Shown here: one piece after another, positions 254 to 63,902 of the stretch
Layout: the number at the start of each line of letters is the position of its first letter
Numbering within the stretch: the stretch's first letter is position 1
DNA from: Bugula neritina
Lineage: Eukaryota; Animalia; Bryozoa
Reading direction: 5' to 3'
DNA: 64,000 bases
NCBI GenBank assembly: GCA_964035545.1
Contig: OZ037769.1
Coordinates: forward strand, 1,178,001-1,242,000
Position numbers and translations under genes: made by a program
The notes under the pieces: generated by a model
Seen by the model: the letters and a program-made list of their open reading frames with translations, nothing else
The model's database searches: none
Told to the model about the DNA's origin: nothing

Positions 254-3200
254 TTCGAGTGCACCGATCAATCTATTGGTTCGCTCTCCGCTCTCCCAAC
301 CGAGGAGATTCTCATCTGTGGATACTTCGCCTACACACGAGTATCCTGTGAAATTACAGCCTGGAACGATCATGATGCAAGTGATAAGTTGACGGCTGCC
401 GTCTACACTTCCTGTGGAGGTAATCTACTCTGTCAAATATTCAATATCTGTTGACATTATGTCACGTCTGTTGATACCATGTGACTACTGTTGACAGCAT
501 GTGACTTCTGTTGACATCATGTGACTACGTGTACTCTATAGTGTACTCTATAGTGTACTCTATAGTGTACTCTATAGTGTACTCTATAGTGTACTCTATA
601 GTGTACTCTATAGTGTACTCTATAGTATGCTCTATATACAAATTATGTGCTCCATGTTCCATCTGATTTGTTACTCTCCGCATCATGTCTATTTATAGAA
701 CCAACACTACCCAGATCTTTCAGATTTAGTTCTCCATCTAAAGTGACCTTTGATGGGCGAATTCGCTGGCGATTCTATTTATACTGGACGGTAAAAACAT
801 CATTGACACAGAATTATTTTACCATAGCATCAATAATTGATCGGCTCATACTAGAATCGTTTATTATAACATGTAGACTACCCAGAATGTGCATTAATAG
901 TTATCTGAGCTGACATTACAGTTCAGTTTACTTTCTTTCAAGTATAGTTTAGTCTATTATAGATCTGTTTTGAGTTTATTTCGTCTCAGTTTTAATTTAG
1001 TCAATTTTGTTTAATAGAAAAAAATAAAAAAATGTGATTTTACTTTTAATGTGATTTTACTTTTAAGTTCTGTTTAGTTTGAAGTGAGAAACCCTCTAGT
1101 TGGAGCTTTATATAAGGTAACCCTTGCCTGTTTTAGTATCCGGAGAAGTTGGGATGTGGAGGTATAACAAGTTATGAGTTGCGCTATCCTTCTGGCTCTA
1201 ACTCGTCAACCGTTGAGGACCTTGGCACGAGTCGTAATCGCTACCTGTATGTGGACAGTGGAGAGGAAGTAGTTGTGTCAGTCAGGGCGAGAAACAACGG
1301 GTGGTTTTACTCGGACTATGTTTCTTTGACTTTAACGTCTGCAAAACTGGGTGGGTGACTAATTCATATGTAGAAAAAGTTAGGCATTGGATATTGAATT
1401 ATGTAACACCCAATAGAATGAAACTCATTCTTTTTTATGGTTATGTAACAGAACCTGATTGGGGATCTACAGCAGCTGTTTCAGAAACTCTCAACTCATC
1501 TTGTGTCACCGTGTCTTGGAATGAACCAGAGTTCCCTAATGATGTCATCACAGGGTATCAGGTAAGTGAGAACTCCCTCATGATGTCATCACAGGGTATC
1601 AGGTGAGTAAGTAAGAGCTCCCTCATGATGTCATCACAGGGTATCAGGTGAGTAAGTAAGAGCTCCCTCATGATGTCATCACAGGGTATCAGGTGAGTAA
1701 GTAAGAGCTCCCTCATGATGTCATCACAGGGTATCAGGTGAGTGAGAACTCCCTCATGATGTCATCACAGGGTATCAGGTGAGTAAGAGTTATGTTGTAA
1801 AGAAGCGATTTGGGTGCTACATTTGTTGTAAGTTTGAGTCCAATGCACCAAATAAACGAGTCAAACAATTACAATTGTGTAGAGCTAAAAGGACTGATAT
1901 TAGAAATGATTAGAGCATTGTTTAAGTGTTACTGTTCTAGTAATTATTAGTTTGGATATATAAGAGGTGTACATATGATAAAGCTGGTTATATATTATGT
2001 AGATAAAGTGTACAGGCTCTTCAACATGGGCCCTTCTACCTGTCTCTCAACTGGCATACACTACCTGCGGATATGAACCTTATGATGCAGTCGACTGTCA
2101 GATCAAAGCTTCTAGTAGTCAAGGTGTCAGTGCAACTCTCTCGAATCCAACTGCCAGGACTTCCTGTGGAGGTGGGTTCTTAGTATATAGTTATACCTAC
2201 ATTGTGTAGTTCTTAGTCTATAGTTATACTTACACTGTATAGTCCTTAGTATATAGTTATACTGACACTGTGTAGTTCTTAGTATTTAGTTATACTTACA
2301 TTGTGTAGTTCTTAGTATAAATTTTATTTTTTTAAAGGGATCACTTTGAGTTTATATTCAGTCAATAGAGAAGAATTGCATATGAGTATATGAATGTTTT
2401 ACAGTTCCAACACCTCCCCGCCAGCTCTATCTCTCTCCTTACTTTACATCCACCAATGATGGCCGTCTCCGAAATCGGTACAGGGCTGGTTGGCAGGTCA
2501 GTGGTGATTCAAATGTCATTGTACAAGTTCTGCTCAGTTGCATTTGCGAGAGTTAGATCATTAATTAAATTATATGATTTCAATATCAAAGGCGTTTTGG
2601 CTAAATTTGGAGAATTTGTAAAAAACTGACAGGTTTTTGTTACAATCAGAATATTGATGAGAAAATTCACAACAGCTGAGTAGTTTAATTGTGTGCAACT
2701 TCTCAAAATACAAAGAGTAATTTTTAGAAACTAGCTTTGTGCCAGGAACTGCATTTCTTTGCTATTAACCAGTTGTTCTCTGAGAAAATTACCTCTTTTG
2801 TCTTCAGTGCTAAGATACCATACTGGATCATCAACATATTCATTTTGACTTATTATTTCATGCATTTTTGTAAATTGTCTTTGCATATTGAAGTTTAACC
2901 ACATTATCCTTGCTAATTATTCATAATGCGTGTCGCAGGCCCCGGCTAATGTAAGATGCGCCAGTGTGAATGTCTACGAGCTGAGGTTCCCGTCAAACTC
3001 GTCTACTACCATGTCTACGTCGTCTACTAGTTGGTACTACTTGTACGCTGACGGAGATGTAGAGGTCACCTTGTGGGTCAGAGCTATTAATAGCGGCGGA
3101 TTCTACTCCCAACCTTCTACTCTCACTATAACCACCGGGAGTATTCGTAAGTACTTACACGTCTAACTGTATAATTATATTCTAGTATATCTGTAAGTTT

Positions 3201-61300: not shown

Positions 61301-63902
61301 TAATAAAATACATAAATATCTATGTTTAGTACAAGTGTACTTCACAAGATGACTGGACTATCACAGAGAACACTGAGTTACAGACCCAGATATGTGGATA
61401 TTCCCATTCTACAGATGTACAGTGTGAGCTGGAAGCGTGGAGCAGTCATCAGTACAGTTCAATTACTACTTCTGTAGTTCGAACTTTCTGTCCAGGTATA
61501 GCTTAAAGTGCAGTAGTATATAAATATGCTTTATTGTGCATGAGACAGGTTGACTGGTTCCTAGTACAGATAGTTAGTCAAAGTGGCAAACCATGAGCTA
61601 ATTAAGTAAAATATTGTCATAGCTTTATCTCTAAAAGTTTGTATAGTGAAAATGTTTTATTACATCATAATTTTATTATTTATCACAAAACTATGCATTT
61701 GGAAGGAACGGAGCTTGTTTATAAAACCCTTTTGTCAAGTATTTTTACTGTAACCATGGCTGGATTATATTTAAAGTAAGAGAGGGAAAATTTTCAAATC
61801 TATTGAAGTTTACTACATGAGAAACCATCAAGTTTAAAGAAAAATGTTCAAAAATTGCTATTTTTAGCTCCTTTGAAACCAACAGCCGTTCAACTAGCAG
61901 GAATGACACCTACACAAGTTTTGACGGGTGGTGAAATTAAGCTAAGATATTCCATACAGTGGACTGTAAGTATGGTTTGAATAAATATTAAACAAATATT
62001 TGGTTTATACGATGTGTCATGCCTTAAATAATCTCTGACTCAATTGACAGTCTCTTGGGAGTTGCTTTTTGAGTCTGTTCACTTTTACCTATAGCCCATA
62101 GCAAATAGCTAAGTTCTACCAGCTGGTAGGTAATCCTAATGCTTGCAGGGTGCTTAGTCAGTCACTTCAGGTTTCCTTTTTTATTATTAAAGGCACCAGA
62201 GATTTCAAACTGTGGAAGTATAACAGGATATGATGTAAGATATCCAACAACTGAATCTACACCTACACAAGTCAGTAGTACCAGTACTAGCATACTGACA
62301 GATGGTGATGTGGAGATAACTTTCTCCGTTAGAGCTAAGAATAATGATAACCTCTACTCAGACTATGAGACAATTGTGTTTACATCTGATAAATTAGGTG
62401 AGAATATATGACTATGTTCAATCTATTAACAAGGAAATATGTTTGTACAGTAAATGATGTTTATAGTGCAAAATTTGTTGCAGCTTAAAGACAAAATTTT
62501 TAAAATGTTTTTATTTGAAAGGTCCAATTTGGAGCGGTACTCCCCAGCTTCTTATCCACCCTTCTAGTAGTGAGTGTGTCTCACTATCCTGGACTCTACC
62601 AGATTATTCTAATGGTAATATACAGAAGTATGAGGTGAGATATTCTCATTCTATATAGAATCTAAGTTGAAACATATTTTTGTGATTTTGTAATTTTTAG
62701 CTAAATAATAAAAAATAGTTTTCAGTTCTTATTGAAATGTTTCTAGATCAAGTGTACAGGTCAAGCAGCGTGGACAGAAGTTGAGTCATCTAAACTGGAA
62801 ACACTTGTCTGTGGATTTTTTCCAAACACAGAAGTAGAGTGTATAATGAGAGCATGGAATGAACAGACATTCAGTGATGTCATTACATCAGATAAAGTTA
62901 GGACTTACTGTTCAGGTAAATTTCAATGACATTAACAATTTATTATGCGTATTAAAATCTTGGGTGTTGCATTTATTACCTAATTTAGCCAAAAACAATT
63001 TTTTGTATTTTAACTGTAACTGTAACCATAGAATTATTATTAAAATAAGGAAGCGAAAATTATAAATTCTATTAAAGTTTACTACATGGGAAAACCACCA
63101 AGTTTAAAGAAATGTTAAAAATTGCTATTTTTAGCTCCTTTAAAACCAACAGCCGTTCAACTAGCAGGAATGACACCTACACAAGTTTTGACGGGTGGTG
63201 AAATTAAGCTAAGATATTCCATACAGTGGACTGTAAGTATGGTTTGAAGAAATATTAAACAAATATTTGGTTTATTCGCTGTGTCATGCATTAAATAATC
63301 TCTGACTTATTTGACAGTCTCTTGGGAGTTGCTTTTTTGAGTCTGTTCACTTTTACCTATAGCACATAGCCAATAGCTAAGTTCTACCAGCTGGTAGGTA
63401 ATCCCAACGCTTGTAGGGTAATTAGTCAGTCACTCCAGATTTCCTTTTTTATTATTAAAGGCACCAGAGATTTCAAACTGTGAAAGTATAACAGGATATG
63501 ATGTAAGATATCCAACAACTGAATCTACTCCTACACAAGTCAGTAGTACCAGTACTAGCATACTGACAGGTGGTGATGTGGAGATAACTTTCTCTGTTAG
63601 AGCTAAGAATAATGATGACCTCTACTCAGACTATGAGACATTTGTGTTTACATCTCCTAAATTAGGTGAGATTATATGACTATGTTCAATCTATTAACAA
63701 TAAACTATTTTTGTATAGTAAATGATGTTTATATTTCAGAATTTTTTGCAGCTTAAAAACAAAATTTGTCAAATTGTTTTATTCAAAAGGTCCAATTTGG
63801 AGCGGTACTCCCCAGCTTCTTATCCACCCTTCTAGCAGTGAGTGTGTTTCTCTATCCTGGACTCTACCAGATTATTCTAATGGTGATATACAAAAGTATG
63901 AG
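52399..63902 (+). CDS. Secreted or membrane receptor, 3'-partial: signal peptide, two [F-type-lectin-like, F-type-lectin-like, FN3] modules, then tandem Cys-rich FN3 repeats; paralog of the left receptor
   Basis: Exons 52399-52468 ([23 protein letters not shown]), 52935-53111, 54311-54547, 55285-55464, 56390-56632, 57342-57457, 57555-57720, 58287-58478, 59133-59369, 60085-60270, 60638-60877, 61119-61234, 61330-61495, 61868-61965, 62193-62397, 62522-62634, 62747-62915, 63135-63232, 63461-63665, 63790-63902; phases consistent. Lectin-fold motifs NxA...AVDG...WWRVDL...EVEV. The gene continues beyond the window. Confidence 0.88.
52704..52765. repeat. (AATC)n microsatellite
   Basis: Pure run. Confidence 0.95.
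53605..54130. mobile_element. Degenerate palindromic (foldback) element in an intron
   Basis: Purine-rich left arm mirrored by a pyrimidine-rich right arm; ccaaaatagct (~53776) vs agctattttgg (~53884). Confidence 0.45.
56709..56834 (-). mobile_element. Short hammerhead-bearing retroelement fragment (Penelope-like LTR or retrozyme) inserted in a (TA)n tract
   Basis: ~125-bp insert flanked by (TA)n on both sides and absent from the paralogous intron at ~60920-60970. Confidence 0.6.
56715..56761 (-). ncRNA. Type I hammerhead ribozyme (minimal, Penelope-like-element/retrozyme type)
   Basis: Minus strand reads UCUGUG-CUGAUGA-GGGG-ACAAA-CCCC-GAA-ACAGC-U-GCUGU-C/CACAGA: 6-bp stem I, intact CUGAUGA and GAAA core, 4-bp stem II, near-palindromic stem III and a GUC cleavage triplet. 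Confidence 0.85.
56835..57327. repeat. Long (TA)n/(TACA) microsatellite
   Basis: About 490 bp; source of the spurious poly-IY ORFs. Confidence 0.98.
60970..61097. repeat. (CACACG)n microsatellite
   Basis: Pure run in an intron. Confidence 0.97.

Follow-up and report, generated by a model that had tools for sequence, protein, structure and literature searches.

The 64,000 nucleotides of Bugula neritina DNA analysed here (contig OZ037769.1, positions 1,178,001 to 1,242,000; hereafter the window) correspond to C5:1178001-1242000 of a genome that totals 216.0 Mb on nine contigs of chromosome scale, in agreement with the 216.00 Mb and 9 pseudomolecules published for B. neritina (PMC11480708), and carry two receptor-like genes, left and right, on either side of a phospholipase D (PLD)-like gene and three TRIM genes. 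We propose, with a probability of about 0.6, that the two receptor genes belong to a lineage-specific array of paired recognition receptors, in which related ectodomains are connected either to an immunoreceptor tyrosine-based activation motif (ITAM) or to a tyrosine phosphatase, and that the TRIM and PLD genes are neighbours of this array. The window would probably represent the near end of a receptor array of ~190 kb on chromosome 5 (C5), with the left (G_L) and right (G_R) genes as the least typical members of the family. The locus thus offers concrete candidates for self/non-self recognition in the form of tandem surface receptors with a fast-changing outer domain and an ITAM or built-in phosphatase, and an inhibitory arm that carries its own enzyme, if true, would set them apart from usual paired immune receptors. 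For now, the TRIM and PLD genes are better kept out of the receptor system.

The context examined comprises 40 kb upstream and 120 kb downstream of the window as well as a second receptor locus on C5, and positions below 0 or above 64000 are window-relative positions in these flanks. Exon bounds are approximate, as they are based on open frames, and searches were done exon by exon, the only joining being the local concatenation of codon alignments for the ratio of nonsynonymous to synonymous substitution rates (dN/dS). Because introns split the domains, single-exon Pfam scores are weak for most fibronectin type III (FN3), B-box, NHL and C-half lectin exons, and profiles of paralogous exons were used instead.

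Starting from the right window gene, the array runs in the order G_R, G2, G3, G4, G5, G6, G7. Three members, G3, G4 and G6 (+93.7 to +151 kb), are complete and encode two F-type-lectin-like domains, a series of FN3 domains, a membrane-proximal domain of the type found in receptor protein tyrosine phosphatases (RPTPs), a Sushi domain, a transmembrane (TM) segment and a tail in which five DDTYSKV repeats accompany a strict ITAM, YSRL-x8-YDKI; in G3, the membrane-proximal domain gives a Pfam match to Fn3_PTPRU above cutoff (E 6.8e-10, 39.8 bits). The composite architecture that the original prediction had pieced together from the two partial window genes is therefore real, but it is found in their downstream neighbours rather than in the window genes, and with two lectin domains instead of four. 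Protein tyrosine phosphatase (PTP) exons, none of which lie within the window, come after G5, G7 and two units of a second, diverged array (locus A, C5:465-534 kb), located ~0.65 Mb from the window locus. Locus A contains at least four units with paired lectin domains and FN3 repeats, ITAM tails and PTP exons, where units composed of two lectin domains, FN3, Sushi, TM and the ITAM YTGL-x8-YEHL alternate with PTP-tailed ones. Across the genome, lectin exons of the family are found on C5 only; its recent duplicates share ~96% identity and G5 has a frameshifted lectin exon. Transposase-like open frames are present beside the latter exon (+122.5 to +124 kb), of which the one checked in Pfam gave no match. 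Elsewhere on the chromosome, an isolated Sushi and ITAM-tail exon pair with internal stops (C5:8288634-8289517), 68% identical to the tail of the window array, is probably a dispersed pseudogene fragment of the receptor family.

Three mutually unalignable tail types, YIDV-x8-YETI of the left window gene, YSRL-x8-YDKI of the downstream array and YTGL-x8-YEHL of locus A, each feature an ITAM or near-ITAM with an 8-residue spacer (consensus Yxx[I/L]x6-9Yxx[L/I], PMC9546547). Shuffled tails yield the strict ITAM in ~1% of cases and its relaxed form in 2.5-4%, and the recurrence of the motif in three tail types is the best evidence that it matters. Furthermore, comparison of six paralogues reveals a dN/dS of 0.76 (dN 0.114) for the outer lectin domain versus 0.41 for the inner one, with values of 0.34-0.62 for single FN3 exons of paralogues, and the variation in the outer domain is clustered in three patches, one of which features indels. 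This would fit faster change at a binding surface, with the reservation that paralogues and not alleles are being compared.

As to the origin of the receptor stalk, a profile of one of its recurring FN3 exons (fnA) was searched against 1.84 billion proteins and found its best named matches in three Watersipora subatra proteins, XP_067932383, XP_067932699 and XP_067932624, automatically named PTPR delta-, Q- and kappa-like in RefSeq. One of these relatives features the same Cys-FN3 pairs followed by a PTP_tm-type domain, a TM segment and two PTP domains, and the exons of the window and array are colinear with the Watersipora RPTP-like ectodomains. Since the stalk is both homologous to and colinear with these proteins, the family is best placed as a branch of bryozoan receptor phosphatases, to which lectin heads appear to have been added and in some members of which the phosphatase appears to have been swapped for an ITAM tail. 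The earlier statement that no named receptor has this architecture consequently requires qualification, as the stalk is homologous to bryozoan RPTPs and its Watersipora relatives carry PTPR-like names. The ±10 kb flanks of the three Watersipora relatives contain no TRIM, lectin or PLD gene, in a comparison where the relatives are RPTP-type and the flanks short.

The two receptor genes of the window depart from the complete members of the array at opposite ends, as seen from their features:

254..11553, + strand: left gene, array of ~12 FN3 domains in a repeating four-exon cassette (exon BLASTP, profiles and Watersipora colinearity)
11960..12136, + strand: left gene, Sushi/CCP domain, with open frame at 11918-12175 (PF00084, E 3.7e-6, 27.7 bits against a curated cutoff of 20.7)
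13013..13648, + strand: left gene, last exon with TM segment, Tyr/Pro-rich tail, FDNPAY, C-terminal ITAM-like motif and stop (motifs)
52399..52469, + strand: right gene, signal-peptide exon with GTATGT donor (paralogue block comparison)
52927..60882, + strand: right gene, four F-type-lectin-like domains of two exons each (F5_F8_type_C Pfam fragments and profiles)
52937-53116 and 54325-54552, + strand: right gene, exon pair of a lectin-like domain
55284-55469 and 56404-56637, + strand: right gene, exon pair of a lectin-like domain
~57390-57803, + strand: right gene, FN3 domain between the lectin pairs
58286-58486 and 59147-59374, + strand: right gene, exon pair of a further lectin-like domain
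60084-60275 and 60652-60882, + strand: right gene, exon pair of a further lectin-like domain
61124..63908, + strand: right gene, start of the Cys-FN3 array with the left-gene cassette, continuing outside the window to at least +66.6 kb

Four recurring exon types cover the + strand frames of the left gene between 254 and 11553, with fnD and fnA together forming one FN3 domain and fnB and fnC a second, Cys-rich one. A profile built from 13 fnB exons matches FN3 domains of known structure in titin, integrin beta-4, PTPRF/D and the insulin receptor (E 4e-11 to 1e-4), and the fnA profile has no significant match in the PDB. The same alternating cassette is found at 254-11553 and at 57.4-63.9 kb (exon BLASTP E 1e-5 to 1e-14, profile E 1e-17 to 1e-33), which bears out the predicted sharing of a four-exon Cys-FN3 cassette by both flanking genes. 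The first exons of the left gene lie upstream of the window, namely a candidate signal-peptide exon at ~-1291 and the first FN3 half-exon at ~-811. This signal-peptide exon leads straight into FN3, and hidden Markov models of all lectin exons are without a match in the 40 kb upstream; the left gene is therefore without a lectin head and also lacks the RPTP membrane-proximal domain of the full-length array members. Its 165-residue tail, whose sequence is unique in the genome, ends in YIDV-x8-YETI at ~13586-13633, and shuffling this tail produces the relaxed ITAM pattern in 2.5% of cases. The intron between the Sushi and TM exons contains two minisatellites (36 bp x 12 and 22 bp x 7.6; 12173-12599 and 12841-13008).

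A counterpart of the left tail exon is present at 12500-13400 of the draft B. neritina contig VXIV02001341.1, where it shows two in-frame stops and a 1-bp frameshift and has its TM-coding part replaced by 2.5-kb repeats, defects that could reflect either pseudogenisation in that lineage or assembly error. Similarity of the left tail between the two Bugula assemblies was considered as a sign of constraint and rejected, because the flanking non-coding sequence is equally similar (85-88%) and the draft copy is interrupted by the stops and frameshift. Overall, nucleotide identity between the window and the draft contig is 75-88%, which suggests that the two assemblies represent different members of the B. 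neritina species complex.

On the right, the signal-peptide exon lies within a block that shares 90% identity with the sequence preceding paralogue G3. As the second lectin pair was not found to be preceded by a block of this kind, the four lectin-like domains are most likely part of a single predicted gene. The profile of the lectin N-half exons matches F-type lectins, including FBP32 (E 8.5e-11), eel agglutinin (1e-5) and Streptococcus F-type lectins, and that of the C-half has no significant sequence match in the PDB. Alignment of domains 1 and 2 to FBP32 shows that the fucose-binding motif H-x24-R-x-D-x4-(R/K) is absent from both (motif definitions from PMC5712786): domain 1 has Tyr at the His position and no RxD, whereas domain 2 has Arg at the former and K-D-C in place of the latter. 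As for the cation motif h2DGx, AVDGD of domain 1 conforms to it and AVDVN of domain 2 does not. We detected no Sushi domain, TM segment, tail or hydrophobic exon in the right gene before the next gene. About ten Cys-rich exons follow it (+66.9 to +74.7 kb) and recur after G2 (+83.5 to +91.2 kb) with 98-99% protein identity in matching exons; those at +66.9 to +74.7 kb show a faint Sushi match only (E 0.046), with no TM segment or start codon found, and could be either a secreted C-terminal part of the right gene and G2 or a separate gene.

Neither flanking gene is thus the lectin-FN3-ITAM receptor announced in the original prediction, as the left has no lectin exon and the right no detected Sushi, TM or tail, and the two observations named there in advance as speaking against it, a left gene without lectin domains and a right gene without a TM segment and Tyr tail, are what we find for these two genes. 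The contig extension and paralogue count that it had called for did uncover a tandem array (G2-G7) and locus A but did not complete the window genes as lectin-ITAM receptors.

We therefore favour a model centred on the family as a whole. The family would have arisen as a lineage-specific offshoot of RPTPs, with the FN3 stalk and membrane-proximal domain retained in full-length copies, and most members would have gained two F-type-lectin-like heads, the ITAM-tailed ones also a pre-membrane Sushi domain. The variable outer lectin-like domain could then bind an extracellular ligand, upon which ITAM-tailed copies would signal by tyrosine phosphorylation through Src/Syk-type kinases and phosphatase-tailed copies would oppose them, as in paired activating/inhibitory receptors. 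The window genes would be atypical variants, the left headless with Sushi, TM and ITAM-like tail and the right with a doubled lectin head and no detected anchor, and the genes for TRIM-NHL-type E3 ligases, which like the PLD-fold gene are intact neighbours, would probably have been carried along in an old block duplication.

Several points weigh against this model. Overall dN/dS remains below 1, so positive selection is not demonstrated, and ligand binding is a guess, as the canonical fucose triad is absent from the lectin-like domains. In the left gene, YIDV-x8-YETI has Val at the +3 position and conforms only to the relaxed form of the strict ITAM Yxx[I/L]-x6-9-Yxx[L/I], and the proposed signalling assumes, by analogy, the presence of Syk/Shark-type kinases in the genome. 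The way in which the exons are joined, the assignment of all four lectin-like domains to one right gene and the expression of all genes described here are predicted. Of three contig-only public runs from one study, none recorded as RNA, one appears to be the source sample and the other two gave exon-sized pieces with 90-95% identity that come from paralogues or a sibling species, with joints that are non-canonical and paralogue-derived. Finally, the receptor-TRIM adjacency seen at two loci (discussed below) may be more than passive linkage.

Many FN3-rich receptor phosphatases act in development or adhesion, and the receptor family could likewise serve development or cell adhesion and not immunity, its arrays being ordinary lineage-specific duplication. 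The closest homologues are indeed RPTP ectodomains, the lectin-like domains lack canonical sugar-binding residues and dN/dS values are everywhere below 1. However, duplicates at ~96% identity, a frameshifted lectin copy with transposase-like frames and hypervariable indel patches in the outermost domain would be expected more of recognition families, and the ITAM recurs in three unrelated tails, so that we regard a purely developmental or adhesive role as possible though unlikely.

The atypical structure of the window genes raises a different explanation, namely that they are decaying truncated copies at the array edge, headless on the left and anchorless on the right, and that their bracketing of the TRIM and PLD genes is without functional meaning. 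The missing lectin and RPTP membrane-proximal domains on the left and the missing TM segment and tail on the right are consistent with such decay, as are the stops and frameshift in the draft-contig counterpart of the left tail and the visibly disrupted G5. Nevertheless, the exon-sized frames of both genes are all open in this assembly and both genes have plausible signal-peptide exons, whereas the draft-contig defects may be assembly errors, and we consider this account improbable.

Between the receptor genes, the window contains the following genes:

15398..16222, - strand: intronless PLD-fold open reading frame of 274 amino acids (fold matches and motif)
25777..32908, - strand: TRIM gene T1, seven exons encoding RING (two), B-box (two), coiled coil, propeller (27417-28166) and a short last exon
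36214..41949, + strand: TRIM gene T2, seven exons (open-frame bounds)
36214-36390 and 37102-37341, + strand: T2, RING exons
37502-37735 and 38278-38475, + strand: T2, B-box exons
39842-40096, + strand: T2, coiled-coil exon
40602-41372, + strand: T2, propeller exon
41746-41946, + strand: T2, last exon
45520..50621, + strand: TRIM gene T3, same seven-exon plan, propeller exon 49333-50145

The prediction of three TRIM paralogues and a standalone PLD-fold enzyme between the receptor genes stands, given the seven-exon structure of the former and the fold assignment of the latter (Z 9-11). All three TRIM proteins begin with MAA. Their first RING exon alone matches zf-RING_2 (PF13639) at 27.4 bits against a cutoff of 27.3, with the last Cys pair contributed by the second exon, an arrangement that holds in 3/3 paralogues; the zf-B_box matches remain below cutoff (E 0.03-0.16 in the three paralogues), as the domain is split over exons, and the coiled-coil exon yields weak coiled-coil-type matches only. 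The propeller-exon profile matches the NHL-derived Pizza6 (3.6e-10) and the NHL domain of Thin (0.0026), and Pfam NHL scores 14-15 bits, below its cutoff of 20. An AlphaFold2 model of the T2 propeller with a predicted local distance difference test score (pLDDT) of 78 is a beta-propeller with Thin, TRIM3, Mei-P26 and PknD among its top matches, and WD40 and BamB propellers score alike with NHL domains against this model. No filamin domain was detected in the window TRIMs. Across the genome, at least 107 sequences match the propeller exon, and most of them belong to large arrays on C6, C3, C9, C8 and C5. Tandem repeats occur throughout this part of the window: a 21 bp x 42 minisatellite in the last intron of T1 (25917-26801) is open in several frames and mimics long open reading frames, and 7-bp and 9-bp arrays are found between and within the TRIM genes (35111-35425; 29530-29812).

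The PLD-like protein carries a single HKD-like motif, HCKWLAIE...TSANLT, encoded at ~15659-15721, whose H168, K170 and N188 are invariant in 7 homologues. Relative to HxK-x4-D-x6-GSxN, the Asp is replaced by Glu (it is Asp in three homologues), the first Gly by Thr, and the spacer is longer. Its model has a mean pLDDT of 62, with the first 52 residues of low confidence. In VIA-align, ranks 1-28 are all PLD-superfamily or PLD-like chains (Z 4.9-10.9), with unrelated chains beginning at Z 4.3; the top matches are TrmB, FAM83, SauUSI, Nuc, NucT, BfiI and Zucchini (Z 8.1-10.9 over 127-144 aligned residues). The Foldseek top 50 are likewise all PLD-type but weak, with E about 1e-3. Pfam PLDc matches none of the 7 homologues, the profile finds no match among PDB sequences, and no signal peptide or TM segment was noted in the protein. 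The presence of a single HxK...N motif in each chain implies an active site formed by a dimer, and the protein is, on the basis of the model, most likely a dimeric single-HKD phosphodiesterase. The gene is single-copy in the genome, and its six homologues (one from B. neritina and five from environmental contigs, the one inspected being AT-rich) so far confine the family to Bugula and environmental contigs. Its adjacency to the left-tail exon is kept in the draft B. neritina contig (75-88% nucleotide identity), an observation of little weight, as the contig belongs to a very close relative. Between the PLD-like gene and T1 (16600-25800) lie ~3.5 tandem copies of a 2.5-2.7 kb unit with 62-95% identity between blocks, relatives of which flank the orthologous PLD/tail segment on both sides in VXIV02001341.1; these copies point to a dispersed long-unit satellite or a non-autonomous element.

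Could the receptors be parts, together with the TRIMs and the PLD gene, of a single co-adapted locus for immunity or allorecognition, with sensor, ubiquitin-signalling and nuclease-effector components held together by selection? The animal is colonial, with the genetics of bryozoan allorecognition unknown, and the tandem receptor arrays, variable outer domain and ITAMs would suit such a role. Moreover, the TRIMs most closely related to T1-T3, apart from those of the window itself, come after locus A at 547-565 kb, so that receptors and TRIMs of the same subfamily are neighbours at two loci; in a rough calculation from match positions, with an estimated 35 or so TRIM clusters, an interval the size of a receptor locus would overlap one by chance in ~2-3% of cases. 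(Two TRIM-NHL genes are found after locus A, the propeller exon of one being broken by stop codons.) The two neighbourhoods, however, probably derive from one ancient block duplication and the adjacency therefore counts as a single event. Near the remoter cassette relatives on C3 and C7 there is none of the at least 107 TRIM propeller-exon matches, no TRIM occurs within 10 kb of the Watersipora relatives, and the PLD gene, present in one copy, has no counterpart at the second receptor locus. For these reasons we read the PLD gene as a bystander and the TRIMs as long-standing neighbours that may or may not be tied to the receptors in function, and the linked sensor, ubiquitin-signalling and effector unit put forward in the original prediction, which the wide expansion of the TRIM family does not favour either, appears quite improbable. 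A still bolder version, in which C5:0.46-1.37 Mb would be a bryozoan histocompatibility-type complex whose polymorphic lectin-headed ITAM/phosphatase receptors set fusion/rejection or symbiont/pathogen recognition, with co-duplicated TRIM-NHLs tuning their turnover or signalling, would speak to a self/non-self recognition whose genetic basis in bryozoans is unknown (PMC3342096), and we hold it to be highly improbable.

The 40 kb before the left gene are occupied by unrelated genes, among them C-type lectin exons on the + strand (-38 to -31 kb; Pfam Lectin_C 4e-8), a gene for an ELAV-like RNA recognition motif protein on the - strand (-28 to -25 kb) and a large + strand gene. Lectin-type genes thus seem abundant near this chromosome end.

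Among known systems, the paired recognition-receptor family proposed here is closest to RPTPs with all-FN3 ectodomains of the PTPRQ/PTPRJ type, with which it shares a homologous Cys-FN3 cassette and, in full-length members, a membrane-proximal Fn3_PTPRU/PTP_tm-type domain; G5, G7 and two locus A units still terminate in PTP domains. Unlike these phosphatases, the window genes are devoid of a phosphatase domain; N-terminal F-type-lectin-like domains, two or four in number, have been added in most family members, and a pre-TM Sushi domain and short ITAM tail in the ITAM-tailed ones. The combination of F-type-lectin-like and CCP/Sushi domains with a single TM segment recalls Drosophila furrowed/CG9095 (C-type lectin domain, F-type lectin domain, several CCPs and TM), and some mosaic F-type lectins also depart from the fucose-binding motif (PMC5712786). 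In contrast to furrowed/CG9095, the proteins described here have a long FN3 stalk, one Sushi domain, ITAM or PTP outputs and no C-type lectin domain; the term 'fibronectin type III' does not occur in the F-type lectin review (PMC5712786).

The neighbouring genes have counterparts of their own. The window TRIMs share the RING and C-terminal NHL-type propeller, and putatively the B-box-like zinc finger and coiled coil, of the TRIM-NHL E3 ligases (TRIM2/3/32/71, Brat, Thin, Mei-P26). Whereas the canonical TRIM-NHLs form a small, conserved set, the family here is massively expanded and its window members have no detected filamin domain. The PLD-like protein resembles single-HKD PLD enzymes (Nuc, NucT, Zucchini/PLD6, BfiI) and the pseudoenzymes FAM83 DUF1669 and TrmB in fold and in having one HxK...N motif per chain, and differs from them by HxK-x4-E/D, by TSAN in place of GSxN and by the lack of a PLDc match.

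With regard to signalling, the family resembles both paired activating/inhibitory receptors and the Hydractinia Alr proteins in its tandem arrays of single-pass receptors, in which similar ectodomains are wired to opposing outputs, and in the ITAM consensus, matched in G3, G4, G6 and locus A. It differs from them in its lectin-like and FN3 rather than Ig ectodomains and in an opposing arm that would be a built-in phosphatase rather than an immunoreceptor tyrosine-based inhibitory motif. Extreme allelic polymorphism and genetic linkage to fusion/rejection characterise the invertebrate allorecognition complexes, Hydractinia ARC and Botryllus FuHC, and the likeness of the present family to Alr is one of tandem arrays and tails. 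Judged from its predicted domains, the receptor family combines elements of mosaic F-type lectin proteins, RPTPs and paired ITAM receptors.

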